From NCBI RefSeq assembly GCF_032444005.1, contig NC_091290.1, positions 7,626,001 through 7,690,000 on the forward strand: a stretch of DNA of 64,000 bases, written 5' to 3'. The stretch's first letter is position 1; every line of letters starts with the position of its first letter. Source of the DNA: Ranitomeya imitator (lineage: Eukaryota). The notes under the pieces were generated by a model that did not search any database, was not told the origin of the DNA, and saw only the letters and a program-made list of their open reading frames with translations. Shown in pieces: positions 1-53,803 of the stretch. The position numbers and the translations under genes were made by a program.

Positions 1-355
1 CCCTGGTGTCCATAAAAGATACGATCTATTGAGATACAAAATAGATTATCCTGAAGGGAAAGTGTAAAGAAACAGCACAGAAAAGCCAGAAGTCTCAAAA
101 ATGGTGACACAAACCAATTTTTTTTTTTTTCACCTACTGATATGGTAAAATAAAACGTGTATGTGGCTGGTTAGTAGCAATCGCAATGAGCCGGAGAAAC
201 AATATTAATATTTATTATTATTATTATTATGTAAGTTTCCATTCACTGCTGGAGAGGTTATAAAGTGAGGGCCGTCCCCTTCCGCTCGCTGCAGATTCCC
301 ATCGTTCACAATGTCGTCCTGTCGGTTTCTTCCTGATTCCTCTTCTTCCCATCAG

Positions 356-462
356 ATGGCGTTCCCTGTTCTCAGAATCCGAGCGCGGCCATAAAGAGCT
401 GGATCCACTACAATAAGGAGGAGCGGGAGGGATTCTCCGAGGTGCTGATCTCCAGCCTGAAG
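356..462 (+). CDS. KBTBD4: KBTBD4 penultimate coding exon (end of BACK region)
   Basis: Polypyrimidine tract plus CAG acceptor at 353-355 and AAG|GTAGGA donor at 463. Translates (D)GVPCSQNPSAAIKSWIHYNKEEREGFSEVLISSLK, matching human DGVPCSQNP...WINFNKEERE...SLK from recall. Ends in phase 0 and joins EIGENVHIY at 7193. Confidence 0.93.
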
Positions 463-553
463 GTAGGAACAGTCCACAGTGGAATCGTCACAGCACAACG
501 GTTTACTTTTTGCTACACTTCCATAAGTCATTATCGCTAGTGTTAGGACAGGC

Positions 554-958
554 AGAGCAACCGTGATAGAAAGGTGTCAGGACACGCAGAGCAACCGTGA
601 TAGAAAGGTGTCAGGACACGCAGAGCAACCGTGATAGAAAGGTGTCAGGACACGCAGAGCAACCGTGATAGAAAGGTGTCAGGACACGCAGAGCAACCGT
701 GATAGAAAGGTGTCAGGACACGCAGAGCAACCGTGATAGAAAGGTGTCAGGACACGCAGAGCAACCGTGATAGAAAGGTGTCAGGACACACAGAGCAACC
801 GTGATAGAAAGGTGTCAGGACACGCAGAGCAACACAGCTATGATAGAAAGGTGTCAGGACACGCAGAGCATCGCAGCTGTGATAGAAAGGGGTCAGGACA
901 TGCAGAGCATCACAGCTGTGATAGAAAGGTGTCAGGACACGCAGAGCATCACAGCTCC
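554..958 (+). repeat. Minisatellite, 34-bp unit AGAGCAACCGTGATAGAAAGGTGTCAGGACACGC changing to a 39-bp variant at the 3' end
   Basis: Unit starts at 554 and 588 (period 34). The last copies have the 39-bp form that gives the 13-aa repeat in ORFs 767/801. Confidence 0.95.
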
Positions 959-1494
959 CTGTCTGTGCAGCTGCAGACCTGTCTCATTGCCTGTGGAAAG
1001 CTGCTACAATGGACACCTTATCAGACGTGGAGCGATGGATGTAGTTGCCCCTTCTGGTGAATCCGGTTGTCCTTCATGTGGAGCTCGGGTGCGGTGCTTC
1101 CCTGTTGAAGGTGCGGGACCACCCGGTATGTACGGAGCCACACGGCCTCATATAATGTAGCTGGTTCTCATGTTGTCCGCCATCATATCTAGTAGCCACA
1201 ATCTGCCTCGCGCTTCTTTTCATCTCCTTTACACTTGGTGACATCAGGGATGGTGATTTCCCTACGTGGCGCCATGTTCTGCTCCTCGGATCATTTTCAC
1301 ATCGATTTCCCGGGGCTTCTCCTACTTGTGTCCTGGACGTCGGCAGCAGAGTCAGGGGTCTGGATGTGTGGGGTCTGTACACACACTACTAACATAAAGT
1401 TAGGGACACTTGGCTTTTGGGTGAAATTTATGGAAACTGTAAAGTTCCTGCTACAGTGATCTTTTATCCTGTAAGTCGGGCATTAAGTAGAACG

Positions 1495-3026
1495 AATAAC
1501 TTGTCCTGTGGCCTTCAGCATCAATTACAGCCGACATCATCTGCTGCTAACAAGTGGAGTTATTGTCGCTCGGACATTGCGTCCCACTCTTCTTGTAGCG
1601 CGGCCCTCCGGTCATTGAGGTTCTAGGGTACAGAGTTATGAGCCTCTACATGGTGACCCAGAGGTATTCTGTGTGATTCAGGCCAGGAGAAAGTGTGGAC
1701 TGCTTCATCTGAGGTCCCCCCAGGCTCCATCAGCTGGTCCCTAATGATGCGACCTCGATGAGATGGAGCATGGCCGTCCATGAAGATGACCTTAGGCCGG
1801 TGTCTGTGCATAGCTACAATCAGTGGATTAATGACGTTATTCCCGTAGTAGTGGCCAGTGTAGGGCCGTTCTGTATGACTAGACCATGTAACCACCACCA
1901 AAGCCTCGTTTGGTGACCACAGTGGCTGATGCACAGCGCACTCCTTGAAGTCTCCAACATCATTGGCGGCCATCTTTTGTGCTCAGCGTGAACAGAGTCT
2001 CATCAGTGAACAGCGCTGAGGCCACTAGTCCCTCATCCTGCGTAGATGTTCCCTGGCCCATGGTGGTGCGGTCAGGTACGTTGCCGGTCGTCTAGCACAA
2101 AGACCACGCTGATGTGAATGGTTTTGAATGGTCTGACCCTTGGGCGCCTCTCCCGTCCCTTACATGTGCGGCGTTCATCATCCGGGTCTGAAGGGCATCG
2201 TTCACAATGAAGCAGTCATTAGTGGAGGATGTGGCAGAGGACGTCCACGTCTGTGACTCTTCCGATCTCTCTTTTCACCGGCTGATGACTCTGTGACGCT
2301 CTGAACCCAGTGGCCACTTCTCTGCCTTTCTGTGACTCTTCCCGTCTCTGTAGTCATGGCTGATGACTCTGATGCTCAGTGATCACTTCTCTGCCTTTCT
2401 GTGACTCTTCCAGTCTCTGTAGTCATGGCTGATGACTCTGATGCTCAGTGGCCACTTCTCTGTCTTTCTGTGGCACTTCCAGTCTCTGTAGTCACGGCTG
2501 ATGACTCTGATGCTCAGTACTTCTCTGTCTTTCTGTGGCACTTCCAGTCTCTGTAGTCACGGCTGATGACTCTGACACTCGGAGCTCAGTGGCCACTTCT
2601 CTGCCTTTCTGTGACTCCTCCCGTCTCTGTAGTCACGGCTGATGACTCTGATGCTCAGTACTTCTCTGCCTTTCTATGGCTCTTCCAGTCTCTGTAGTCA
2701 CGGCTGATGACTCTGATGCTCAGTACTTCTCTGCCTTTCTATGGCTCTTCCAGTCTCTGTAGTCACGGCTGATGACTCTGTGACGCTCAGTGGTCACTTC
2801 TCTGCCTTTCTATGGCTCTTCCAGTCTCTGTAGTCACGGCTGATGACTCTGTGACGCTCAGTGGTCACTTCTCTGCCTTTCTATGGCTCTTCCAGTCTCT
2901 GTAGTCACGGCTGATGACTCTGACACTCGGAGCTCAGTGGCCACTTCTGTCTGAGCACATCCTTCCTGAGGCCTCATGATGGTGACGTCCTGTGGGATCA
3001 GCTGTTCGGTGTCGTCTTGGTCTCAT
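1495..3026 (-). pseudogene. Tc1 transposase pseudogene (frameshifts and stops), split by an internal minisatellite
   Basis: The - strand reads ATGAGACCAAGACGACAC at 3026, then segments resembling CSQTEVATELRV, RGLCARRP, WAREHLR, ALFTDE (first catalytic D), FMDGHAPSHRGRII (second D region), the SPDLNxxE-LW motif, ALQEEWDAM and AVIDAEGHRTSY. Confidence 0.85.
2280..2950. repeat. Minisatellite, about 10 copies of 65-78 bp, derived from the Tc1 HTH coding region
   Basis: GGCTGATGACTCT recurs at about 2280, 2358, 2427, 2496, 2561, 2637, 2702, 2767, 2838 and 2909. The reverse complement encodes YRETGRVTERQRSG/VATELRV pieces. Confidence 0.92.
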
Positions 3027-3639
3027 GATGATGACGACTGTTTAATGCCAATTCTAGTTGACCCCTGAACAGTCGCACATGTGCGTTCTGTGGATCCTGT
3101 GTTGCTGGAAACTGCTTATTACTAGAGCAGGAAGGAGCGGCCATTGCCCAGCTGGACAGCCGTATTTGTGACTGACCCTGTCTGTACGTCGCCTCTGCTA
3201 TCACAAACCGCCATGTTGTGCTCACACATCACGACCGCCCTCCGCAGAGAAACCGACCACAGGACGGAGACGACGGCCGCAGCCATTCCTCACACTGCTG
3301 AGGTAAAGTGAAAGCTGAGCCCTGATTGGTTGTTATGGGTAATACACAGTACCACTTGGTCTTGATGGAGGCCCCGTAAGTGTCATCCTGTACAGACCGC
3401 ACAGAGGAAACGTGCCCCCCGCGCCCCCATGTATATGTACAATAAATGTGAAGTAAATGGAGAAAGGTATGTGCCCCCTCCACATTCACTTACTGGATCT
3501 ATTCTGACCTCCTACTCTACATCCATAGACATTAAAGAAGTTCTCCACGATGGGGAAAAAAAAATGACCCCAGTTATGTAATAGAAATGGCAGCCGCTCC
3601 TAGTCATGGGTCAGGACGGTCTGCAGTCTTTAGAAGCAC

Positions 3640-3880
3640 CGCTCCTGAGACCTGCGCCTCACTGACAGAGGAACTGTATGGCACTGGTGAGCGGCTGGAG
3701 ACGGGAAAATAAAAATCTCCTCCTTGGCCAACTGAACACAGAGGACTGAGGCCGGACAATAAAAAATCCTCAGTCAGCCGAGTAGATTTCTTTTCCTGTC
3801 ACCTCCCGTCTTCATCCGCTCACCCGTGTTGTGCTCTTACCATTCAGCTCCTCTGTCAGTTGAGGCGCAGGTGTTGGGAG
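3640..3880. mobile_element. MITE-like inverted-repeat element (Kolobok/T2-like left end TTAA|AGAAGTTCTCCAC at about 3534)
   Basis: ACCTGCGCCTCACTGACAGAGGA (about 3651-3673) is inverted as TCCTCTGTCAGTTGAGGCGCAGGT (about 3849-3872). No matching right terminus found. Confidence 0.45.
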
Positions 3881-4046
3881 CTGTCTCTTCAGACCTCAGC
3901 CTGACTTGTCAATTTTTATTTTTTTTAGAATGAGCTATTCTAATTTTCACATTAAAAAAATAAAGTTTAATTTGAAAATTATCAAGCAATATCTGTTCAC
4001 TTTTTTTTTGTTTGTTTTTTCTTTTTTCCCCTAATGGTTATATAAG

Positions 4047-4121
4047 GAGGAAGAAATAGACGAGGATGTGGAAGACTTCATTTTTGAGTACTCTGAATCA
4101 GACACTGATGAATATGTTGAA
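4047..4121 (+). CDS. Nested gene, exon A (acidic: EEEIDEDVEDFIFEYSESDTDEYVE)
   Basis: TAAG| acceptor after a T-rich tract, 75 nt (25 codons), GAA|GTAGGT donor, phase 0 at both ends. Confidence 0.7.
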
Positions 4122-4218
4122 GTAGGTGTTTTGTTTTTTTTTATTTTTTATTATGAAGCCATCCTATATGTTTTACCTTCCAAACACCGTTGTTTTTATT
4201 TCTCTTGTGTAATAACAG

Positions 4219-4296
4219 GAAAGTTCAGAGGAATATGAAGAAGCACCTGACCGTAAGCATGCGGCCATGATCCGCGTCGAGAGAGAGGGTGAACTC
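4219..4296 (+). CDS. Nested gene, exon B (ESSEEYEEAPDRKHAAMIRVEREGEL)
   Basis: CAG| acceptor at 4216-4218, 78 nt, CTC|GTGAGG donor, phase 0. Flanked by 97-nt and 103-nt T-rich introns. Confidence 0.7.
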
Positions 4297-4361
4297 GTGA
4301 GGTTTCACTAAATTTATTTGTAATATTTTTACACTTTTTTTTTTTTCAAAGAAATGTAATT

Positions 4362-4398
<37 letters not shown>

Positions 4399-4399
4399 G

Positions 4400-4758
4400 C
4401 AGTTCCGGGCTCAACTCCAGAAACGTGTAGAGGAAAACAACCTCCGTACCCCATGGTGCCTCCAGAATGACCCACTATGGGGCCTGGGTGAGGAACGGCC
4501 GCTCCCGCCGCCCGATCCTAAAGGAAGACTGCAGAACACAAACTGGTGTCAGTGCGGGCATTGTTCCATCATGCCTCATGTAGCGGAAAGCGTCTGCTGC
4601 CGAGAGGTTCCCGCCATTAACAGATTCCTAGAAAACGAGTCTTGTGTTACGAGACACATGGACTTTGCCGGCTTCATACTGTCCAGAGACCTTCTCGTTC
4701 AGATGCTTCAGTTCTCCACCAAATTGACAGCGTCAAATTTTGCAGAAAAGGAAAATGG
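4400..4758 (+). CDS. Nested gene, exon C: P2X7 ballast/KolX-like Cys-rich domain, N-half
   Basis: Long poly-T plus TAG| acceptor. Open frame QFRAQLQKR...RLQNTNWCQCGHCSIMPHVAESVCCREV...CVTRHMDF...EKENG. The WCxCGxC..E..CCRE and CVTxHxxF motifs match the P2X7 C-terminal ballast family. GG|GTAAAT donor, phase 2. Confidence 0.85.
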
Positions 4759-4990
4759 GTAAATTTTTTTTTTTTATTTTTTTTGCATATTTTATTTTTA
4801 CCCTGTATCCCATAATGTGATATTGCTGTTCCATCAATATAAAATAATCCGTACAAAAATACCTGTTAAATCTGTTAACTAACAATGGGGCAGAAGTCTC
4901 TGGCTGTCGGCGCATGCTGCAGGTTGCTGAGCCACCTGATGCTTTATTACATGGAGCACAGGGATGGACACGCTGATTGATATTATTTAT

Positions 4991-5700
4991 TTAATAATAA
5001 TAATAATAATAATTTTTATTTATATAGCGCCAACATATTCCGCAGCGCTTTACAAATTATAGAGGGGACTTGTACATACAATAGACATTACAGCATAACA
5101 GAAATACAGTTCAAAACAGATACCAAGAGGAGTGAGGGCCCTGCTCGCAAGCTACAAACTATGAGGAAAAGGGGAGACACGAGAGGTGGATGGTAACAAT
5201 TGCTATAGTTATTCGGACCAGCCATAGTGTAAGGCTTGGGTGTTCATGTAAAGCTGCATGAACCAGTTAATTAATTTATTTATTTTTTTTTTTTTTTAAT
5301 ATAGGCCACACAGGGATCGTTAGGTTAATGCATTGAGGCGGTAGGCCAGTCTGAACAAATGAGTTTTTAGGGCACGCTTAAAACTGTGGGGATTGGGGAT
5401 TAATCGTATTATCCTAGGTAGTGCATTCCAAAGAATCGGCGCAGCACGTGTAAAGTCTTGGAGACGGGAGTGGGAGGTTCTGATTATTGAGGATGCTAAC
5501 CTGAGGTCATTAGCGGAGCGGAGGGCACGGGTAGGGTGGTAGACTGAGACCAGAGAGGAGATGTAGGGTGGTGCTGAGCCATGGAGTGCTTTGTGGATGA
5601 GGGTAGTAGTTTTGTACTGGATTCTTGAGTGGATGGGTAACCAGTGTAATGACTGGCACAAGGTAGAGGCATCGGTGTAACGGTTGGTGAGGAATATGAT
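4991..5700 (-). mobile_element. 5'-truncated L2/CR1-clade LINE (RT C-terminus, 3' UTR and (ATT)n tail) inside the nested gene's last intron
   Basis: ORF 5320-5703(-) carries LHWLPI..RIQYK..LRSAND..F..AAP.LWNALP..IR..FKRALKTHLF. The 3' end has the AGCGC-loop-GCGCT stem, AATAAA and a TTA/ATT repeat tail at about 4991-5052. Confidence 0.88.
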
Positions 5701-5721
5701 CATTTATTTTTTTTCCTCCAG

Positions 5722-5917
5722 GCACCTTCGGGAGGCAGCCTATCGCAGATTCACTACCATGATCTACGGATTTCTCGGGAATAGACGCGGATTAACGGTG
5801 CCTTCGTGTGTGGTCCGTAACATTCGGGAGACGTTCCCGAGCCCCGACGGAAATTATCCCAGCTGTAAATGGTATTGGGAGTCCGTGTCCGGTCCGCCGG
5901 CCGACGTGGCTTTCTAA
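5722..5917 (+). CDS. Nested gene, exon D: ballast/KolX-like domain C-half and stop
   Basis: TTTTCCTCCAG| acceptor; its first G completes the phase-2 GG codon. Reads HLREAAYRRFTTMIYGFLGNRRGLTVPSCVVRNIRETFPSPDGNY...*, compared with P2X7 LRHCAYR...LPSCCRWRIRKEFPKSEGQY from recall. AATAAA follows at about 6237. Confidence 0.85.
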
Positions 5918-6893
5918 GTGATGTCCCGAGCGATCAGACGTGCGCGGCACTTTATCTCTTCACTGTTATGCGGTTTTATATTTCATATGGGAAAAAAAGT
6001 TAACATTTTTCTAAGTTTGTTTAAAAAAAATAAAACGGGGTTTTTTCGGTGTTTTCATAATTTTCCCTTCATGGCTGTGTTATTTGGGATATTATTAGGT
6101 GTTGGTTAAGTTTTGTTTTTATATGAAAAGTTTAAAAAAACCACAAAAAAAAAACCCCTTAAGTTATCGCACTGTATCAGGACAAAGGTTGTATATTTGC
6201 TGTGTTAGATGTTTGTTGTAATTTTTCACAAAGTTGAAATAAAAATTTGTTAAAGAAAAGTGAAAGATCTTTGTTTTTTTTTGTTTTTTATGAGTATTGT
6301 AGTGATTTATCTTAAAGTGGTTGTGACGTCCTCACCTTGATTTGTCATATTGCTATCTGACCTTTACCCTGCTGAGAAACTACCGCCATTATGAGACCTG
6401 TGCCGTAAAGGGTTCACTGTTAGGCAGCTGGTACAGAGGAGCGAGTGGATTTGCAGGTCCCTAGTCCAGCGGCCATGTCAGTCATCCATGGCCGGCATAA
6501 GGGAGCCCTGTGAGCCACCTCCTTTCTGCCAACATGCCCGGATCCTCTTCGGATTTGTAGGTGCAGCACAATGTCCTAGTGGTGGTGTGACGGCCATATT
6601 ATGTAGCGCCAGGATGGTTAATCAGAAGAAGGACCCCGGGGATGCAGGTAGGAGGTGATTCACAGGGCTCCTGTGCGGCAGCCATGGCTTCTGGATGAAG
6701 GTCATGCAGATTGCTTGGCTCCTCTATAGTAGGTGGTACATGTAACCTCCAAATAACGAAAAGCAAAACTGATGCTCTGCATGTTCTGACACCTTTCTAT
6801 GATCACTGTCGCCAGTTTACCAAATCTCCAGGGAGAAATCTTACCCCTTAGACCCATCAGAGGCCGCTCATACAGCTGAATCGGGTTTGTTGC

Positions 6894-6938
6894 TTTGCAC
6901 TGAGGAGGGGCAAACACCCCGAAACAGGTGTCTGCAAA
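6894..6938 (+). ncRNA. Type I hammerhead ribozyme (minimal, Penelope/retrozyme-like), sense to the KBTBD4 intron
   Basis: TTTGCA (6894-99) CTGAGGA (6900-06) GGGG-CAAACA-CCCC (6907-20) GAAA (6921-24) C-AGGT-G T C (cleavage triplet GUC, 6930-32) TGCAAA (6933-38). Complete CUGANGA/GAAA core with stems I, II and a 2-bp stem III. Confidence 0.85.
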
Positions 6939-7192
6939 CAGATTCTGGTTTGGCTCTTATCCTGTGACAAGGCTCGTTAAAGAGTTAAGGATTGCTCCAT
7001 CCAATAAATCCTATACGTGGCTGTTGCGAGCGTTCTTTCCCTCTGGGAGGGCGCTCATTTTCGTAGAGCCTCTGACATATAATTGCTGGGACCTTGTTTT
7101 TTTTTTTTCAGAGTAAATCCCTTTTAATGACCTCCGCTTTTATGTTTTCAGAAAATCTTTTAAAGCGTTTCCTTGTGTATTTTGTCTTTAAG

Positions 7193-8053
7193 GAAATCGG
7201 GGAAAACGTGCACATCTACCTGATCGGGAAGGAGGAATCTCGCACGCACTCCATTGCCGTCTCTCTCCACTGTGCGCAGGACGACTCTATAAGTGTAAGC
7301 GGGCAGAACAGTCTGTGCCACCAGATCACTGCCGCGTGCAAACATGGCGCCGACCTCTACGTGGTAGGAGGGTCCATACCCCGTCGAATGTGGAAATGTA
7401 ATATGGAGACCATGGACTGGGAGCGATGCGCACCGCTTCCCCGGGACCGTCTGCAGCATACGCTGGTGTCCGTGCCCGGCAAGGATGCCATCTACTCCCT
7501 GGGGGGTAAGACCTTGCAGGACTCGCTGTCTAACGTGGTGATTTACTACCGAGTATCGGACAATGTCTGGACAGAGACTAGTCAGCTGGAGGTCAGCATC
7601 TCCGGGGCGGCGGGGGTGAACCTGAACGGGCTCATCTACCTACTGGGAGGCGAGGAGAACGACCTGGACTTCTTCACCAAACCCTCTCGTCTCATCCAGT
7701 GTTTCGATACCACCACAGAGAAGTGCCACGTCAAACCCTACCTGCTGCCGTTTGCGGGTCGAATGCACGCGGCCGTTCACAAGGACCTGGTGTTCATCGT
7801 CGCGGAGGGGGACTCGCTGGTGTGTTATAACCCGCTGCTGGACAGCTTCACCCGGCTGTGCCTGCCCGAGGTCTGGAGCTCGCGGCCAGCGCTCTGGAAA
7901 ATCGCCAGCTGCAACGGCTGCATCTACGTGTTCCGGGATCAATACAAGAAAGGGGACGCCAACACCTTCAAGTTAAACCCCGCCACCTCGGTGGTGACCG
8001 TCACCAGCGGCATTCGCTTTCTGCTTACCAATCTGCAGTTTTTACTGGCATGA
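7193..8053 (+). CDS. KBTBD4: KBTBD4 last coding exon (Kelch repeats)
   Basis: TTTAAG| acceptor at 7192. EIGENVHIYLIGKE..THSIAVSLHC..GGSIPRRMWKC..DRLQHTLVSVPGKDAIYSLGGK..LLTNLQFLLA* is nearly identical to vertebrate KBTBD4. The ORF-track start at 7094 is intronic read-through. Confidence 0.97.
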   Translation, partial: EIGENVHIYLIGKEESRTHSIAVSLHCAQDDSISVSGQNSLCHQITAACKHGADLYVVGGSIPRRMWKCNMETMDWERCAPLPRDRLQHTLVSVPGKDAIYSLGGKTLQDSLSNVVIYYRVSDNVWTETSQLEVSISGAAGVNLNGLIYLLGGEENDLDFFTKPSRLIQCFDTTTEKCHVKPYLLPFAGRMHAAVHKDLVFIVAEGDSLVCYNPLLDSFTRLCLPEVWSSRPALWKIASCNGCIYVFRDQYKKGDANTFKLNPATSVVTVTSGIRFLLTNLQFLLA

Positions 8054-8854
8054 TGCTTTGTCGGACGACTGGAGACGCCGCTCGTTGCTTTGGTTCTTGG
8101 ATTTAAAAAAAAAATATATATGAAAATCTGGTCGTAAAGAAGAAAGCGGGATGGGACTGCCAGCCTAAAATGGTGGCATTAGTGAAGCGTCCTCTGCCGT
8201 CTTCTTGCCGCTGCTGAATCTATGCTTAGATGCTTTTGTTTAGAGTCAAGACAAACCAGTCCCATCCACATCCAGAATCCTAAATCTTGATTGTGGTGAT
8301 ACATCACAAGCTCCAATCAATGGGGACGTCGGGAGGATAAAATAGGGAAAAAAAGGCAGAAACCTTTGACTGGGCGCAGTTCCCCTCGGCTCCACTAGGT
8401 GGCTGATGGTTGGCGCGTGTGGACTTTCTGTAGGCCGCAGAGGAGACCAGGGCCCATCACACCCTCCGCTGATCACTTCTGCCTTTTTCTACAGTCGTTG
8501 GGGTCCTGGCACCCGAGTCCCACGTAAAAACTTCTGACAATTGGCAGCGATCTATCTGACAGCGCCTCGTTAGCAGCAGCCGTTTATGCCCGTCTGACGA
8601 TGATGCGCTATTGGGAAATGCCAGAAGAAAAATGAACTATTATGTAGATCAGGGTTTTGTGTTAAACTTACTTTGTTTTTTTTTAATATCACAATCCATA
8701 TTAAAAAAATCAAAATATGAAATCTTTGAAAAAAATTTTGCCCACTGGGACTATTCCTGTTGTTTTGAAGAAATCCACATGTACATGATCTGCAATGAAC
8801 AAACAGATGCTGTGTTTTGTATTGAGGCATCTAATGAGCGTGTGCAAAGCTCAT

Positions 8855-9485
8855 TGTACAGGAGGGGGAGGTGAGCTGTGACAACACAGGATGCACCATT
8901 CACAATAGGTGATATCACAGCTCACCTCCTCCTCCTGTACAATGACTGATAACACCTCTATATACAGTAGATATCAGTCATTGTACAGGAGGAGGAGGTG
9001 AGCTGTGACATCACCTATTGTGAATGGTGGATCCTGTGTTATCTACTGTATATAGGTGTTATTGGTCATTGTACAGGAGGAGGTGAGCTGTGATATCATG
9101 TATTGTGAATGGTGGATCCAGTGTTATCTACTGTATATAGAGGTGCTATCAGTCATTGTACAGGAGGAGGAGGTGAGCTGTGACATCACCTATTGTGAAT
9201 GGTGGATCCTGTGTTATCTACTGTATATAGGTGTTATTGGTCATTGTACAGGAGGAGGTGAGCTGTGATATCATGTATTGTGAATGGTGGATCCAGTGTT
9301 ATCTACTGTATATAGAGGTGTTATCAGTCATTGTACAGGAGGAGGAGGAGGTGAGCTGTGACATCTATTGTGAATGGTGGATCCAGTGTTATCTACTGTA
9401 TATAGAGGTGTTATCAGTCATTGTACAGGATGAGGAGGTGAGCTGTGACATCTATGGTGAATGGTGGATCCTGTGTTATCAATCA
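8855..9485. repeat. Minisatellite, 87-90-bp unit (about 6 copies), preceded by one inverted copy
   Basis: GTCATTGTACAGG at 8977, 9065, 9152, 9240, 9327 and 9417. A reverse-complement unit lies at about 8882-8970. Confidence 0.9.
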
Positions 9486-10643
9486 TTGTAAACCTTATGA
9501 TGATAATGAATCTGCTGACAACTCTTCCTTAAAGGACATGAAGTATTAGTCTAAACAGCCACCGTAATCAGTGCGTAAATTGTCCGATTTATTAATTTTA
9601 TTTTTTTCAGGATTATTAAAAAAAAAAAAACAACCTATTTCAGAACCTTGATGTACAGAGCAGGTCATTTTCTGATGCCGCGTTCCCTGTGAGGTTTTTG
9701 TCTGATGACCTATTGCTGTGGGGTCCGAGCCGTCTGGAAGCCTCATGATCAGCCAATGACTATAATGGAAGCAGCGGGTTCAGAGCGGCAGGGATCCGGT
9801 GTGATCTGCCTCTATGGCGGGCGGTAGGACTTCACATCCATATCCTATATACCTCCTGCACTTCACTACATGGCACAGGTTGTAATAATGATCATTGGAG
9901 GCCACACTTAGGGGCTGTGCACAGGCTGGAGGCAGATTTTATGCTCCGTATGAGGCCATACTCACATATAGAAATATATGCAGCTTTATTCTGCACCACA
10001 AAACACAATGGTAAACTGCTCAGAATATTGTTAATTAATGCATAAAGGCCGGGGTTCTGCACTTAAAAGCACAACTGTGTTGTTGTTTTTCACATTCCAT
10101 TATCCGGTTCCCCATTAAAGCCTACAATGAAAAAAATATGGCGTGGGCTCCCCTGTATTTTTGATAACCAGCCAGGCAAAACTCACAGCTGTCTGCTTTA
10201 GCATGGCTGGTTATCAAAAAGAGAGGTGTCCCCACGCTGTTTTTTCTTTAATTTAAAGAAGTAATTAAAAACAGCGTGGAGACGCCTCCATTTTTAACAA
10301 CCAGCCTTGCTAAAGCAGACAGCTGGGGGGGCTGGTATACTCAGGCTGGTAAGGGGCCATGGAAACTGCCCCCCCAGCCTAAAAATAGTAGCCCACAGGC
10401 GCCCCAGAAAAGGCACGTCTATTAGATGCGCCAATTCTTACGCTTTGCCCGGTTGTTGTCCCATCAGCTAAACAATCGGACCCGGTGGCTCCGGTGTAAT
10501 ATCCTCCAGTTTTTTTTTTATTGGTTAATGTCCGTAGCCCCTAACGCTATCTCTATAGAGTGCACCGGCAGATGTAGACCCCCAGCAGGAGTAGAGGATG
10601 TGTGGAAGCCCGGAGGATATAAACCATTGCCAAAAACCCCACC

Positions 10644-10762
10644 GGAGCGGCTCGTGACCGGAGCGGCTCGTGACCGGAGCGGCTCGTGACCGGAGCGGCT
10701 CGTGACCGGAGCGGCTCGTGACCGGAGCGGCTCGTGACCGGAGCGGCTCGTGACCGGAGCGG
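10644..10762. repeat. 16-bp tandem repeat GGAGCGGCTCGTGACC (about 7 copies) within a dispersed-repeat-like segment
   Basis: Direct reading. It explains the 16-aa periodic ORFs at 10518-10818. Confidence 0.9.
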
Positions 10763-11496
10763 GGTGAAGGCTGCCCCTGTGAGCTGCCAATACAAAACTC
10801 TAACCGGAAGAATTTCAATTAAAAAGTGATTTTAAATAAAGAAATGTCATTCACTACGCTGCACGTATCGAGAGAATCGCACGTTCACACCCAGGCGAAA
10901 AATTCCGGGTATTAAAGGGATTGTCCACGGCGAAACATCTCTCTAAATGTGCTTGTAGTAAGGCATACTCGCCCAACCGCTGCTCGTCCAATGCTGCCCC
11001 GTCCCCCAATGGTTCAATGTAGACAGATGTGACCGCTGCAGCCCATCAGAGACCACCCTTTCAAAATGCATCCACCCTCTGCCTATAGAGGAGTGTGACG
11101 GTAAGTCGTGGCCTGAAGCCGTTCAGATGACAAGGAGGCTCGAGTCCGCCGGAGCTCTTTGTTCTGGCCCATACACGGGGGGGGGTCCTGAGTGGGCTTT
11201 TCTGGATTTACGCTGACGGTTGTCGGCCGCTCTCCCTCTGATAAACTTTTCCTATTTTTATAACTTTTGGCAAATGTGGTTCAAAAAACTTTAGTGGAAT
11301 TGCACATAGTTGGGGGGACAGAAAACTGCGACTGGTAAATGAGGGGCGCAATATCGAAGACCCCATAACACCTCACACTCAAGGTTTTATCTCTTACCAA
11401 AGGGTCTCTTATGACTGGCAAGTTGGATCTTGACAAAATAAAAAGTATCATTTTTATCAAAGGATAAGCACCAATATCAGGGATACGTAGAGAATG

Positions 11497-12740
11497 GAGA
11501 AGAGACATAAGGATTACAGAGCTCACTGACTGATCACTGGTAACTCATTCTGCTATGTACAGTGATACATAAAGGATGGAGAAGACACATAAGGATTACA
11601 GAACTCACTGACTGATCACTGGTAACTCATTCTGCTATGTACAGTACTGCATAAAGGATGGAGAAGAGAAATAAGTACTACAGAGCTCACTGACTGATCA
11701 CTGGTAACTCATTCTGCTATGTACAGTACTGCATAAAGGATGGAGAAGAGAAATAAGTACTACAGAGCTCACTGACTGATCACTGGTAACTCATTCTGCT
11801 ATGTACAGTACTGCATAAAGGATGGAGAAGAGAAATAAGTACTACAGAGCTCACTGACTGATCACTGGTAACTCATTCTGCTATGTACAGTACTGCATAA
11901 AGGATGGAGAAGAGAAATAAGTACTACAGAGCTCACTGACTGATCACTGGTAACTCATTCTGCTATGTACAGTACTGCATAAAGGATGGAGAAGAGAAAT
12001 AGGTACTACAGAGCTCACTGACTGATCACTGGTAACTCATTCTGCTATGTACAGTACTGCATAAAGGATGGAGAAGAGACATAAGGATTACAGAGCTCAC
12101 TGACTGATCACTGGTAACTCATTCTGCTATGTACAGTGATACATAAAGGATGGAGAAGAGACATAAGGATTACAGAGCTCACTGACTGATCACTGGTAAC
12201 TCATTCTGCTATGTACAGTACTGCATAAAGGATGGAGAAGAGAAATAGGTACTACAGAGCTCACTGACTGATCACTGGTAACTCATTCTGCTATGTACAG
12301 TACTGCATAAAGGATGGAGAAGAGAAATAAGTACTACAGAGCTCACTGACTGATCACTGGTAACTCATTCTATGTACAGTGATACACAAAGGATGGAGAA
12401 GAGAAATAAGTACTACACAGCTCACTGACTGATCACTGGTAACTCATTCTGCTATGTACAGTGATGCATAAAGGATGGAGAAGAGAAATAAATACTACAG
12501 AGCTCACTGACTGATCACTGGTAACTCATTCTGCCTTGTACAGTGATGCATAAAGGATGGAGAAGAGAAATAAGTACTACAGAGCTCACTGACTGATCAC
12601 TGGTAACTCATTCTGCTATGTACAGTGAAACATAGAGAATGGAGAAGAGACATAAGGATTATAGAGCTCACTGATCACTGGTTACTCCTTCTGCTATGTA
12701 CAGTGATGCATAGAAGATGGAGAAGACAAATAAGGATTAC
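11497..12740. repeat. Minisatellite, 82-bp unit (about 15 copies), between the KBTBD4 and PTPMT1 3' ends
   Basis: CAGAGCTCACTGACTGATCACTGGTAACTCATTCTGCTATGTACAG recurs with period 82 (11681, 11763 and so on). Confidence 0.95.
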
Positions 12741-13175
12741 AGGCTAGAGATTGCACTCACTGATGGATGCAGTCTTTGATTAACCATTATACATAGAGGA
12801 TGCAGAAGGCAAAATGTTACAAGTTTTGTAATGAAACTCTGTAACAATAATCCTCCACACGTGTATATCTGTGAAATTACAGTGAAGAGCCAGGAGCAGA
12901 CCACCCATCACTAATAAGGGGGGGCTCCAGTCTGTCCTCTGCCCCTTATGTCACTGCAGTCATCGGGTAAGTGTAGGATCACGTATTCAGATATATGCAG
13001 ACAATGCATTCTACCGGGATGGATGTGGAACAGGTCGCATATAATATCCAGTATAAGGAGGAAACTGGTGCCAGTATAGGTGAGAAATGACAGCATAACG
13101 GCGCGTCTACAGATCTGCACCACGTATATAATACACTCATATACACACACAGGCACACGTGGACCCAGAAACACA

Positions 13176-13181
13176 TTTATT
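13176..13181 (-). terminator. Candidate PTPMT1 polyadenylation signal AATAAA
   Basis: TTTATT on the + strand, about 35 nt past the PTPMT1 stop. Usage is not demonstrable from sequence. Confidence 0.4.
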
Positions 13182-13215
13182 TCGAAAATCAACTCTAGAA
13201 AATTTCATCTTCATG

Positions 13216-13359
13216 TCACCCTCCGTGTCCCGGCAAGTCCGACTTAGTCACTAAGAGATAAAACCTCTCCAGCATTTGGTGCTGCCGACTGCGGATCAGG
13301 ATATGTGGACGGATTTCCGCTATGAAGTCGCCGGCAACATCCGGCTTCCACTTGTATCT
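13216..13359 (-). CDS. PTPMT1: PTPMT1 exon 4 (last)
   Basis: TTGCAG| acceptor. RYKWKPDVAGDFIAEIRPHILIRSRQHQMLERFYLLVTKSDLPGHGG* is homologous to human (V)HKWSPEEAVRAIAKIRSYIHIR. Phase 0. Confidence 0.88.
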   Translation of the reverse strand, partial: RYKWKPDVAGDFIAEIRPHILIRSRQHQMLERFYLLVTKSDLPGHGG

Positions 13360-13586
13360 CTGCAAGAAAGAATCAAAAATGGTGGCAGTGCTCCAGAATC
13401 GTAACATACAGAATCCAGTGTGCAATCTGAGAAAACAGTAGCCGATAGCGCTCAATGCCAGGCGGCTGCACGGAAAGCTTGCCAGATTTATCGTCTAGCA
13501 CACGGTGTTTTCCTGATACGTAATTTGCAGGGTTACTATGATGGGTACTGTAATCAGGACTCATGTCCTACTGCCAAAACCATCTA

Positions 13587-14260
13587 CAGTGGCTTGTGAA
13601 AGTATTCACACCCTTGTCATTTTTTTGTGTTATGCTAACGCACAACCTGGAATTTCACTGTTTTTTTGAGGGTTTGCATCGGTTCATGTGAAGAACGTGC
13701 CGACATCTGTGAACATTTGGTTTTCTTTTTATTGTGCAGCAAACAACAAATAGGACAAAATAACTGAAACCTTCAGTGTGCAGAACTATTCACCCCCCTA
13801 AAGTCAGTACTGTGTAGACCACAGATTCTCCAGTGGATGAAGGTCGGGGCTGTGACTCGGCCGCTCCAGGACATTTCCACGTTTCCCCTTACACGGCTCC
13901 AGTGTTGCTTTAGCCGTATGCTTTGGGTCATTGTCTTGTTGGACAGTGAACCTCCGTCCAAGTCTCAAATCACTGACAGAGTGAGACAGGTTTTGCTCCA
14001 GAATATCCCTGTATTTCTCATCATCCATCTTCCCCTCTACTTGGACCATTTTCCCTGTCCCTGCTGCCTAAAAACCTCCCCACAGCATGATGCTGCCACC
14101 ATGTTTCACTGTGGGGATGGTGTTCTTGGGGTGATGAGCTATGTTGGTTTGGCGCCAGACATAGCATTTACCTTGGTGGACAAAAAGTTCCATTTTGGTC
14201 TCCTCTGACCACAGCTCCTTCCTCCATACACCTGCGGAGTGTCCCACATGTCTTTTGGCA
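13587..14260 (-). mobile_element. Truncated Tc1 element (TIR plus C-terminal transposase fragment) in PTPMT1 intron 3
   Basis: TA|CAGTGGCTTGTGAAAGTATTCACAC terminus at 13587. The - strand reads [24 protein letters not shown] and QQDNDPKHTAK..SPDLHPLENLW, with a stop and a deletion. Confidence 0.88.
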
Positions 14261-14274
14261 ATTTTTGTGTTTTA

Positions 14275-14579
14275 GGGTATGTTTCCACGTTCAGGAAACG
14301 CTGCGTTTTTTACGCTGCGTTGAGCCGCAACGTCCAGATGTTACAGCATAGTGGAGGGGATTTAATGAAATCCCGTCTCCACTATGCAGGAAAAAACGCA
14401 TGCGGCATAGCCGCGAAAACGCACATGCGGCGCGTCTTTTCAGAATGCAGCATGTCGTTACAATGAGAAGAACACCGCAGGTGACCTGCCAGTGACCTCA
14501 GGTGCAGATGTGATCAGGATTTTACCTGCATAAAACCCTGACCAAATCCTGAAGCAATCCTGAGCGTGGACACATACCT
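14275..14579. mobile_element. PIF/Harbinger-type MITE with TTA target-site duplication
   Basis: TTA|GGGTATGTTTCCACGTTCAGGA ... TCCTGAGCGTGGACACATACCT|TTA: near-perfect TIRs and a 3-bp TSD. Confidence 0.8.
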
Positions 14580-14844
14580 TTAGTGGAGGCCACCTCCATA
14601 GACTTTTCGGATTATTGTGGTCGTATATTTTGCTCACTTCACCAACTTAGACTATTCAGTGCTGATGCATCACACACAAATCAGGTGACAAAAATATATA
14701 CACGGGTTTTAATGCAACAAGATTGGTAAAACGCCGGGGGATGAATACTTTTGCAAGCCGTTGTGTATAGATGTCAGCATTAATGTAACGAGGACCATTA
14801 TGGGGCCCTAATGGGATAAATCGGGGATTAGTGGCAGGTTTTAC

Positions 14845-15036
14845 CTCTATCAGGTAAGCGGCCACCATTGTGGCGCTGCGGGAGCGGCCGGCCTTACAGT
14901 GGATGTAGACGCTGTTGCCCTTTGTCCTGTGCTTGTGAACAAACTCTACCCCCTTCTGTAGGTGCTCGAGGGTGGGAACCCCGGTGAAGTCAATGGTGCT
15001 GAGCCTCAGCTGTTCCACCCCCAAAGCTTCCCACTC
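14845..15036 (-). CDS. PTPMT1: PTPMT1 exon 3 (catalytic HCKAGRSRS motif)
   Basis: 192 nt, TTCCAG| acceptor and GAG|GTAAAA donor. EWEALGVEQLRLSTIDFTGVPTL..VYIHCKAGRSRSATMVAAYLIE. Confidence 0.96.
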
Positions 15037-15469
15037 CTGGAAAGAAAGAAGAGAGATCGTGAAACGCATGGAGGGGTACAAGTGGATAGCAGACTAATAC
15101 ATGGGGGGCAAAGGAAAGGGTGAAAACAAGATATCCATAGGATAGGGGATGAGTGATTGATCGATGGGGGTCCGACCACTGGGACCCGCACCATCTGGCA
15201 CAGCAGGGCTCTTTTGTCCCAGTAGGATGCAGTGTTGGTGCACATGCTCGAGCGCCGCTGCATTCACGCTCTATGCGCCGCCCCCTGCTTTTTCCAGCAG
15301 CTCCAGAGAGGATGAATGGAGCGGTGTTCGGGGGTCCGACCTGCTGTGCCATTTTCTAAAAGGGAGTACTGATCCTGAGACTGAAGGGGATGCAAGGCTG
15401 GTGGAGCGCTGTGAACCCTTCTAATTTGTTTCCTGCTCAGCTGCGCCGCAGCCCATCCAGCTAGGCAGG

Positions 15470-16590
15470 AAAGTGCAGCCGGCCGACTGTGCAGGGGATA
15501 CAGTGCGCCCTGACTGTGCAGAGCTCCTGTGTATCCAGCTATGCAGGAAAGTGCAGCTGGCCGACTGTGCAGGGGATACAGTGCGCCCTGACTGTGCAGA
15601 GGATGCAGAGCAGTGCTCCGGTGTATCCAGCTATGCAGGAAAGTGCAGCCGGCCGACTGTGCAGGGGATACAGTGCGCCCTGTCTGTGCAGAGGATGCAG
15701 AGCAGTGCTCCTGTGTATCCAGCTATGCAGGAAAGTGCAGCCGGCCGACTGTGCAGGAGATACAGTGCGCCCTGTCTGTGCAGAGCTCCTGTGTATCCAG
15801 CTATGCAGGAAAGTGCAGCCGGCCGACTGTGCAGGAGATACAGTGCGCCCTGACTGTGCAGAGGATGCAGAGCAGAGCTCCTGTGTATCCAGCTATGCAG
15901 GAAAGTGCAGCCGGCCGACTGTGCAGGAGATACAGTGCGCCCTGTCTGTGCAGAGCTCCTGTGTATCCAGCTATGCAGGAAAGTGCAGCCGGCCGACTGT
16001 GCAGGAGATACAGTGCGCCCTGTCTGTGCAGAGGATGCAGAGCAGTGCTCCTGTGTATCCAGCTATGCAGGAAAGTGCAGCCGGCCGACTGTGCAGGGGA
16101 TACAGTGTGCCCTGTCTGTGCAGAGCTCCTGTGTATCCAGCGATGCAGGAAAGTGCAGCCGGCCAACTATGCAGAGCAGTGCTCTTGTGTATCCAGCTAT
16201 GCAGGAAAGTGCAGCCGGCCGACTGTGCAGGGGATACAGTGCGCCCTGACTGTGCAGATCTGTGTATCCAGCTATGCAAGAAAGTGCAGCCGGTCGACTA
16301 TGCAGAGCAGTGCTCCTGTGTATCCAGCTATGCAGGAGACTGCAGCCGACCAGACTGTGCAGGGGATACAGTGCAGACAGTGCACCCTGACTGTGCAGAG
16401 GATGCAGAGCAGTGCTCCTGTGTATCCTGCTATGCAGGAAAGTGCAGCCGACAAGACTGTGCAGGGGATACAGTGCGCCCTGACTGTGCAGAGGATGCAG
16501 AGCAGTGCTCCTGTGTATCCAGCTATGCAGGAGACTGCAGCCGACCAGACTGTGCAGGGGATACAGTGCAGACGATGCAGAGCAACATCC
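15470..16590. repeat. Modular minisatellite (about 73/90-bp variants) in PTPMT1 intron 2
   Basis: Recurrent CCTGTGTATCCAGCTATGCAGGAAAGTGCAGCCGGCCGACTGTGCAGG with an optional GAGGATGCAGAGCAGTG module. Confidence 0.92.
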
Positions 16591-53643: not shown

Positions 53644-53803
53644 NNNNNNNNNNNNNNNNNNNNNNNNNNNNNNNNNNNNNNNNNNNNNNNNNNNNNNNNN
53701 NNNNNNNNNNNNNNNNNNNNNNNNNNNNNNNNNNNNNNNNNNNNNNNNNNNNNNNNNNNNNNNNNNNNNNNNNNNNNNNNNNNNNNNNNNNNNNNNNNNN
53801 NNN
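53644..53803. other. Assembly gap (160 N)
   Basis: Run of N. Confidence 0.99.

Follow-up and report, generated by a model that had tools for sequence, protein, structure and literature searches.

A KolX-type P2X7-ballast cassette in the last KBTBD4 intron of the frog Ranitomeya imitator, probably serving as an alternative 3' end

The ballast domain of the P2X7 receptor holds a dinuclear zinc site made by seven cysteines (PMC9587614). The same fold occurs in KolX of the Kol0 Kolobok elements, and both P2X7 and nanor have been proposed as derivatives of KolX (Kojima and Bao 2022, PMC9587614). Host genes are also known to form fusions with transposases by alternative splicing, using an acceptor supplied by the transposon (Cosby et al., bioRxiv 10.1101/2020.05.07.082677; SETMAR, KRABINER). 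KBTBD4, as described in PMC11882444 and in a bioRxiv preprint, is a substrate receptor of the CUL3-based cullin-RING ligase 3 (CRL3) that is dimeric through its BTB domain and engages its targets with its Kelch domain. The subject of this study is a four-exon cassette encoding a ballast domain in the last intron of KBTBD4 in Ranitomeya imitator. It is located in a 64,000-nt stretch of contig NC_091290.1 (positions 7,626,001 to 7,690,000), hereafter called the window, to which all coordinates given with no locus prefix refer. The cassette had been singled out in an earlier annotation made from the letters of the window alone (the sequence-only reading). In the reading preferred here, to which a probability of about 0.7 was assigned, a KolX module has been domesticated in this cassette and provides the CUL3 adaptor KBTBD4 with an alternative 3' end.

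The cassette comprised four exons on the plus strand (75 + 78 + 359 + 196 = 708 nt), each with an AG acceptor and a GT donor. Joined, they gave a frame of 235 codons followed by TAA, with phases of 0, 0, and 2 and no internal stops. The sequence-only reading had drawn this structure and was borne out to the base. It had also placed the cassette within a KBTBD4 intron, which was confirmed: the cassette lies in the sense orientation in the last intron, between the exon ending at 462 and the Kelch exon starting at 7193. The AATAAA that it gave near 6237 is present at 6238, and another was found at 6029. The cassette occurs once in the window. Every letter of the 235-residue product matched residues 31–265 of XP_069596049.1, a RefSeq "uncharacterized protein" of R. 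imitator, which served as the query for the cassette protein. The gene is thus already in RefSeq, as a five-exon stand-alone model with one additional 5' exon (exon 0), and its description as "hidden" had to be dropped. The coordinates of all these features are collected in Table 1.

Table 1. Exons and signals of the cassette, its host gene, and the transposase-adjacent relatives of the cassette
Feature	Position	Strand	Remarks
KBTBD4 penultimate coding exon	356–462	+	Codes for the end of BACK (...EVLISSLK); phase 0 at its 3' boundary; GT donor at 463
Exon 0 of RefSeq stand-alone model	3213–3302	+	30 codons; ATG in CCGCCATG context; donor GTAAAG; residues 1–30 of XP_069596049.1
Cassette exon 1	4047–4121	+	Acidic; 25 codons; no ATG; phase-0 acceptor behind a long pyrimidine tract; skippable exon of length 3n
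Cassette exon 2	4219–4296	+	Acidic; 26 codons; phase 0
Cassette exon 3	4400–4758	+	N-terminal helix; (C)FQNDP.WG motif (here CLQNDP); six of the seven zinc cysteines (WCQCGHC, CC, C); high confidence in the structural model
Cassette exon 4	5722–5917	+	LREAAYR helix; VPSCVV segment with the seventh cysteine; TAA at 5915–5917; aligns to human P2X7 residues 539–592
AATAAA signals at 6029 and 6238	6029–6243	+	Between the cassette stop and the Kelch exon; candidate intronic polyadenylation sites
KBTBD4 last exon	7193–8053	+	Kelch propeller (EIGENVH...LQFLLA); phase-0 acceptor; competing 3' choice
First Engystomops KolX-like/THAP transposase pair	L006:36078–40579		
Second Engystomops KolX-like/THAP transposase pair	L005:14775–20353		

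The product of the cassette is a true P2X7-ballast domain. Exon 3 (E = 2e-9, 38.1 bits, profile positions 70–137) and exon 4 (E = 3.3e-8, 34.1 bits, profile positions 145–190) both matched Pfam PF20478 (P2RX7_C) above its curated cut-off of 23.5 bits, and their colinearity on the profile lent independent support to the 4758|5722 junction. When XP_069596049.1 was compared with the PDB using phmmer, P2X7 chains were the sole sequence matches (E = 7.5e-11). Seven cysteines (C131, C133, C136, C147, C148, C163, and C230 in the numbering of XP_069596049.1) were invariant in 15 frog sequences, and this is the number of zinc-site cysteines given for the ballast (PMC9587614); in an alignment of 60 sequences, six of the seven remained invariant or nearly so. 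From the latter alignment, an AlphaFold (AF2) model of residues 60–265 was obtained with a mean predicted local distance difference test score (pLDDT) of 84.9. A Foldseek comparison of this model with the PDB returned 14 P2X7 entries (E = 6e-5 to 2e-3, ca. 128 aligned columns), with a root-mean-square deviation of ca. 3.3 Å in the better-superposed ones; the next match had an E-value of 3.9. Profile and predicted structure therefore agreed with the family to which the sequence-only reading had assigned the module.

In rat P2X7, guanosine diphosphate (GDP) is contacted by R546, H547, R574, R578, and K583 (Rump et al. 2020, PMC7016195). By alignment, two of these five contacts are kept in the cassette (the equivalents of R546 and R578); H547 is replaced by Glu, R574 by Val, and K583 by Ser. 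Nanor and the P2X7 receptors of fish and frogs likewise have an incomplete set (PMC7016195), and these residues thus do not define the ballast fold. At the His of the P2X7 "RH" pair, Glu was present in three dendrobatoid sequences, and L, V, M, W, or R in the remaining frog copies. The sequence-only reading had taken this Glu as a hint of altered function; the substitution is real, but the hint was over-read, because the His is a feature of P2X7 and not of the frog clade.

The reading frame of the cassette is compatible with that of its host. Of the BTB-BACK part of KBTBD4, the window includes only the last BACK exon (356–462), which was 100% identical to residues 203–238 of R. variabilis KBTBD4. 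Position 462 ends a codon, exons 1 and 2 both open in phase 0, and their lengths are multiples of three; splices from 462 to 4047 and from 462 to 4219 are therefore both in frame. With a splice acceptor at its start and no ATG of its own, exon 1 is consequently internal. An in-frame TAA sits four codons before its start.

Both splices have counterparts in database models of related frogs. When exon 3 was searched with HMMER against 1.8 billion representative proteins, it matched a 264-residue Anomaloglossus protein (70% identity) and a 467-residue Eleutherodactylus coqui protein (46% identity) that is named KBTBD4 isoform X2 by NCBI. KBTBD4 isoforms that have BTB, BACK, and P2RX7_C, and in which the Kelch domain is missing, were found to be modelled by NCBI in nine related hyloid frogs; the BTB and BACK assignments were taken from precomputed Pfam listings. 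Among these chimeric models are X2 of E. coqui, Rhinoderma darwinii, Bufo bufo, and B. gargarizans, X2 and X3 of R. variabilis, Engystomops pustulosus, and Hyla sarda, and a 479-residue product of Dendropsophus. R. variabilis X2 reads ...SSLK|EEKIDED..., with an acceptor homologous to that at 4047, and X3 reads ...SSLK|ESSEEYEE..., a direct splice to exon 2 at the acceptor of 4219. Eight short Logan proteins (P0210–P0216 and P0226) were considered as chimeric transcripts and rejected, as they proved to be first-exon run-ons or BTB fragments. The KBTBD4-ballast arrangement is modelled in databases, yet no description of KBTBD4 with a ballast domain was found in the literature searched; on KolX and P2RX7_C, that search yielded nothing beyond PMC9587614.

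The position of the cassette is conserved. At the E. coqui locus (L002), four cassette exons were found between the BACK and Kelch exons in the same order, position, and phases; the phase-2 split before the LR.AAYR helix is kept, and the first exon is likewise initiated at an acceptor and has no ATG. No nucleotide similarity was found between the intron in the window and the E. coqui locus, as is expected at a synonymous divergence of about 1. One E. coqui intron, that after cassette exon 2 (L002:10202–10299), is of the GC-AG type (GCAAGT), and the rest of the gene is GT-AG. The Anomaloglossus ballast gene is located inside the KBTBD4 gene on the same strand. For the non-hyloid frogs represented in these protein clusters (Xenopus, Bombina, Ascaphus, Pelobates, Spea, Aquarana, Lithobates, Pyxicephalus, Pseudophryne, and Mixophyes), all annotated isoforms are of the Kelch type, which suggests that the KBTBD4-ballast form is restricted to hyloids, although absence from an annotation is weak evidence.

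Selection on the cassette was assessed between R. imitator and E. coqui. The nonsynonymous (dN) and synonymous (dS) divergences of the ballast exons were 0.43 and 1.29, respectively, giving a ratio (omega) of 0.34; the bootstrap interval of the corresponding ratio of proportions (pN/pS) was 0.42–0.68, and a value of 1 was never reached. For the Kelch exon of KBTBD4 in the same pair of species, dN was 0.027, dS 1.02, and omega 0.027. In neutral, substitution-only simulations of the 705-nt frame, in which d is the number of substitutions per site, open frames were retained in none of 5000 runs at d = 0.5 and in 0.3% at d = 0.25. The cassette is under purifying selection, with a protein that changes about 16 times faster than the Kelch domain.

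The origin of the module was approached through its free relatives. The closest free paralogue in Engystomops, P0156, groups with the KBTBD4-linked copies in a well-supported clade. Its gene is arranged tail-to-tail with an intronless gene for a 931-residue THAP protein, a Kolobok-type transposase, at a distance of 280 bp. Atlas neighbours of the THAP protein belong to clusters with THAP and the Mutator-like domain PF20700, some of them also with DEDDh and lambda-exonuclease domains; the latter two are accessory domains of other Kolobok lineages (PMC9587614). A second Engystomops paralogue, P0010, is paired convergently as well, with a transposase 48% identical to the first. No clear terminal repeats were seen around the first Engystomops pair. 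The transposon-borne copy at L006 has the four-exon layout, and its acidic exon opens at an acceptor with no in-frame ATG. Since the homologous acceptor is already present in this copy, the one spliced to KBTBD4 was probably brought by the transposon, judging from the comparison of these loci.

No transposase homologue was found in the window or at the E. coqui and Dendropsophus KBTBD4 loci, in accord with the sequence-only reading, which had reported no transposase frame nearby; a Pfam search of neighbouring open reading frames in the window and at locus L001 gave nothing relevant. The TTAA-bounded termini proposed by the same reading did not gain inverted-repeat support, as the only inverted repeats flanking the cassette were poly-T/poly-A pairs. 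The window thus has neither transposase nor terminal repeats, yet the paralogues at L006 and L005 are transposase-adjacent, which argues that the cassette derives from KolX and is no longer a transposon gene. To this extent, the suggestion of a ballast/KolX-type module that lost its transposase and was retained is supported.

Under the preferred reading, a KolX copy in the sense orientation within the last KBTBD4 intron would have lost its transposase and come to serve as a set of alternative 3'-terminal exons. From 462, the transcript would be spliced either to the Kelch exon at 7193 or to 4047 or 4219, with polyadenylation after 5917 in the latter cases. Two CUL3 adaptors would then be built on one BTB-BACK scaffold, one with the Kelch propeller and the other with an acidic linker and a zinc-binding ballast at the substrate-recognition position, exchanged for the propeller exactly where the domains meet. 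The ballast form would be a second receptor of different binding specificity, set by the choice of 3' exon and intronic poly(A) site. In R. imitator, a nested transcript starting from exon 0 may also yield a free ballast protein of 265 residues. We infer that R. imitator expresses the chimera, that the chimeric protein associates with CUL3, and that its ballast recruits a new partner to the ligase; to identify this partner with the Kolobok transposition machinery is speculation.

The history of the KBTBD4-linked copies was examined in a tree. Six of them (E. coqui, Engystomops, Bufo, Anomaloglossus, and two Ranitomeya) formed one clade (support 96/89), within which the order followed species relationships. 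The approximately unbiased (AU) test rejected a topology in which all nine KBTBD4-linked ballasts were united in one clade (p = 0.001).

Several observations weigh against the preferred reading. Phase compatibility by itself has a chance of 1 in 3, and the chimeric models are automatic predictions. In RefSeq, the copy of R. imitator and that of Anomaloglossus are each given as a separate gene, and no chimera is listed for R. imitator, Dendrobates, or Phyllobates. Between R. imitator and R. variabilis, identity is 88% for the cassette versus 99.8% for canonical KBTBD4, and the cassette has 11 lineage-specific changes in R. imitator versus 3 in R. variabilis, some of them in conserved motifs. 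The R. imitator changes include F-to-L in the near-invariant CFQNDP motif and the replacement of YTGFK by YPSCK; this acceleration could reflect relaxed constraint, or else positive selection. In the tree, free copies are the neighbours of those from Rhinoderma and the hylids, outside the six-copy clade, and the Dendropsophus ballast exon (L004:24416–24811) is situated 9 kb beyond the Kelch exon on its downstream side, within PTPMT1 but on the opposite strand. The placement of the Dendropsophus, hylid, and Rhinoderma copies would be compatible with a second capture, with a local move, or with gene conversion; given these outlying copies and the outcome of the AU test, a single capture is not established. 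Finally, we know of no function for the ballast domain of P2X7 or Kolobok, and of no biochemical function for KolX.

Ballast domains are joined to other host genes in frogs as well. In three dendrobatids, the NCBI isoforms X2/X3 of kelch-like protein 2 (KLHL2) have BTB and BACK followed by a ballast of a different clade (P0040 of R. imitator, P0159 of R. variabilis, and P0158 and P0160 of Phyllobates terribilis, all outside the window). As modelled, a ballast has thus replaced the Kelch domain of a CUL3 adaptor a second time and independently, at the equivalent junction point. In other frog models (P0030, P0075, P0045, P0025, P0123, and P0060), a ballast is combined with KRAB, a KRAB-zinc finger, SET, CLCC1, or a piggyBac zinc-finger region. 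These models suggest that frogs have captured, or at least co-transcribed, KolX-type modules repeatedly. The joining of the ballast to KLHL2, KRAB, SET, and others favours a targeting role for the domain, and its presence in the propeller position of both KBTBD4 and, from an unrelated lineage, KLHL2 argues that it is a binding module. It has been considered further that the ballast recognises the Kolobok machinery (transposase, KolX, or a complex of the two) as a portable module, that it was wired repeatedly to KBTBD4, KLHL2, KRAB, and SET in hyloid frogs, and that KBTBD4-ballast is a ubiquitin-based anti-transposon factor, itself of transposon origin, engaged in an arms race. This extension appears rather improbable at present; if true, it would give the first functional handle on what the ballast domain binds.

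The same observations bear on a weaker alternative, in which the chimera is a Kelch-less decoy that dimerises with canonical KBTBD4 through BTB and dampens or modifies its activity, the ballast being little more than a folded cap. The action of KBTBD4 as a BTB dimer in the CRL3 complex, as described in PMC11882444 and the bioRxiv preprint, is consistent with such a decoy, as are the BTB-BACK region retained by the isoform in the precomputed Pfam listings and the fast evolution of the ballast. A pure decoy, however, would have no need for seven conserved zinc ligands or for an omega of 0.34 across the whole ballast, and the appearance of an unrelated ballast lineage at the equivalent point of KLHL2, and of others on KRAB and SET, suggests a targeting activity. 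The decoy is accordingly regarded as doubtful.

It is unlikely that the cassette is an independent nested gene only, with an internal promoter and exon 0 giving a free, nanor-like protein of 265 residues and the chimeras of other species arising as read-through or annotation artefacts. RefSeq models exactly such a gene for R. imitator, and for Anomaloglossus likewise a separate one, and exon 0 possesses both a GT donor and an ATG in CCGCCATG context. Exon 0 was not found by tblastn in any of the other loci compared, however, and the Anomaloglossus start, placed a short way upstream of the homologous acidic exon, looks as if the model had been extended into the intron. The chimeras were modelled independently in nine species, with the acidic exon alternatively included, and exon 1 of E. 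coqui likewise starts from an acceptor and offers no ATG. The alternative of a retained stand-alone gene, as the sequence-only reading put it, therefore stood in part: the module is retained, but exon 1 is internal and in frame with KBTBD4, and relatives have the cassette annotated as KBTBD4 isoforms. At the R. imitator locus, a KBTBD4 isoform should probably be annotated besides, or in place of, the separate uncharacterized gene. A decaying, functionless Kolobok remnant whose frame is open by chance would account for the missing transposase and terminal repeats and for the accelerated change in R. imitator, but it is highly improbable given the intact frame and conserved splice sites of at least eight species at a synonymous distance of about 1, and the outcome of the simulations and the pN/pS bootstrap.

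Other features of the KBTBD4 intron were recorded. Upstream of exon 0, two tandem-repeat arrays (540–960 and 2270–2940) were observed, and between them lies a fragment of a Tc1-like open reading frame on the minus strand (1623–1973) that had no Pfam match. An imperfect palindrome of ca. 250 nt (3638–3884) is situated between exons 0 and 1; its arms (3638–3706 and 3804–3884) are 74–90% complementary, and by its sequence it looks like a small hairpin-forming repeat element. The third intron of the cassette contains an insert (4960–5705) that resembles an interspersed repeat and includes an (AAT)n run and a minus-strand open reading frame of 127 codons (5320–5703), also with no Pfam match. In Rfam, positions 1–16000 gave no match at the gathering score; with E-values of up to 1 allowed, the interval 6700–7200 gave a single match, to suhB at 7031–7112, which is at chance level. 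The window has a run of N at 53644–53803, and the E. coqui locus has one upstream of exon 1.

If KBTBD4 does use the cassette as an alternative 3' end, the capture of transposon genes by alternative splicing, described for the DNA-binding domains of transposases, would come to include an accessory protein and to reach the ubiquitin system. The ballast has been retained for a long time across hyloids (dS of about 1 between families), at a position where a CUL3 adaptor usually holds its substrate-binding propeller. KBTBD4 is under medical study (UM171, medulloblastoma), and a natural swap of its recognition domain would be a useful comparison.

With respect to the described systems, the cassette shares with KolX (PMC9587614) the ballast fold and the seven zinc cysteines, and its acidic-first, four-exon layout matches that of the transposase-adjacent Engystomops copy. 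Unlike KolX, the copy in the window is single, is spliced to a host gene as proposed here, and has neither transposase nor terminal repeats; in all hyloids checked, its location is a constant one, inside KBTBD4 or beside it. The nanor and stand-alone ballast (ZCD) proteins of fish and Xenopus (PMC7016195) have a short acidic N-terminus followed by a ballast and no channel, and the 265-residue RefSeq model is alike in form; the first exon of the cassette differs in having no start codon, and its orthologues are modelled as KBTBD4 isoforms. As in the fusions of Cosby et al., an intronic transposon gene would have been captured through a transposon acceptor while the ancestral isoform coexists, and KRAB and SET partners recur. 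Unlike in those fusions, an accessory protein rather than a transposase DNA-binding domain was captured, and the host contributes a ubiquitin-ligase scaffold in place of a transcriptional effector. The P2X7 ballast (PDB 6U9V, 9E3M) is the sole match of the cassette in the PDB by both structure and sequence. In P2X7 and KBTBD4 alike, the ballast was captured at the 3' end of the host gene (PMC7016195, PMC9587614); the host is an ion channel in the former case and a soluble CUL3 adaptor in the latter.

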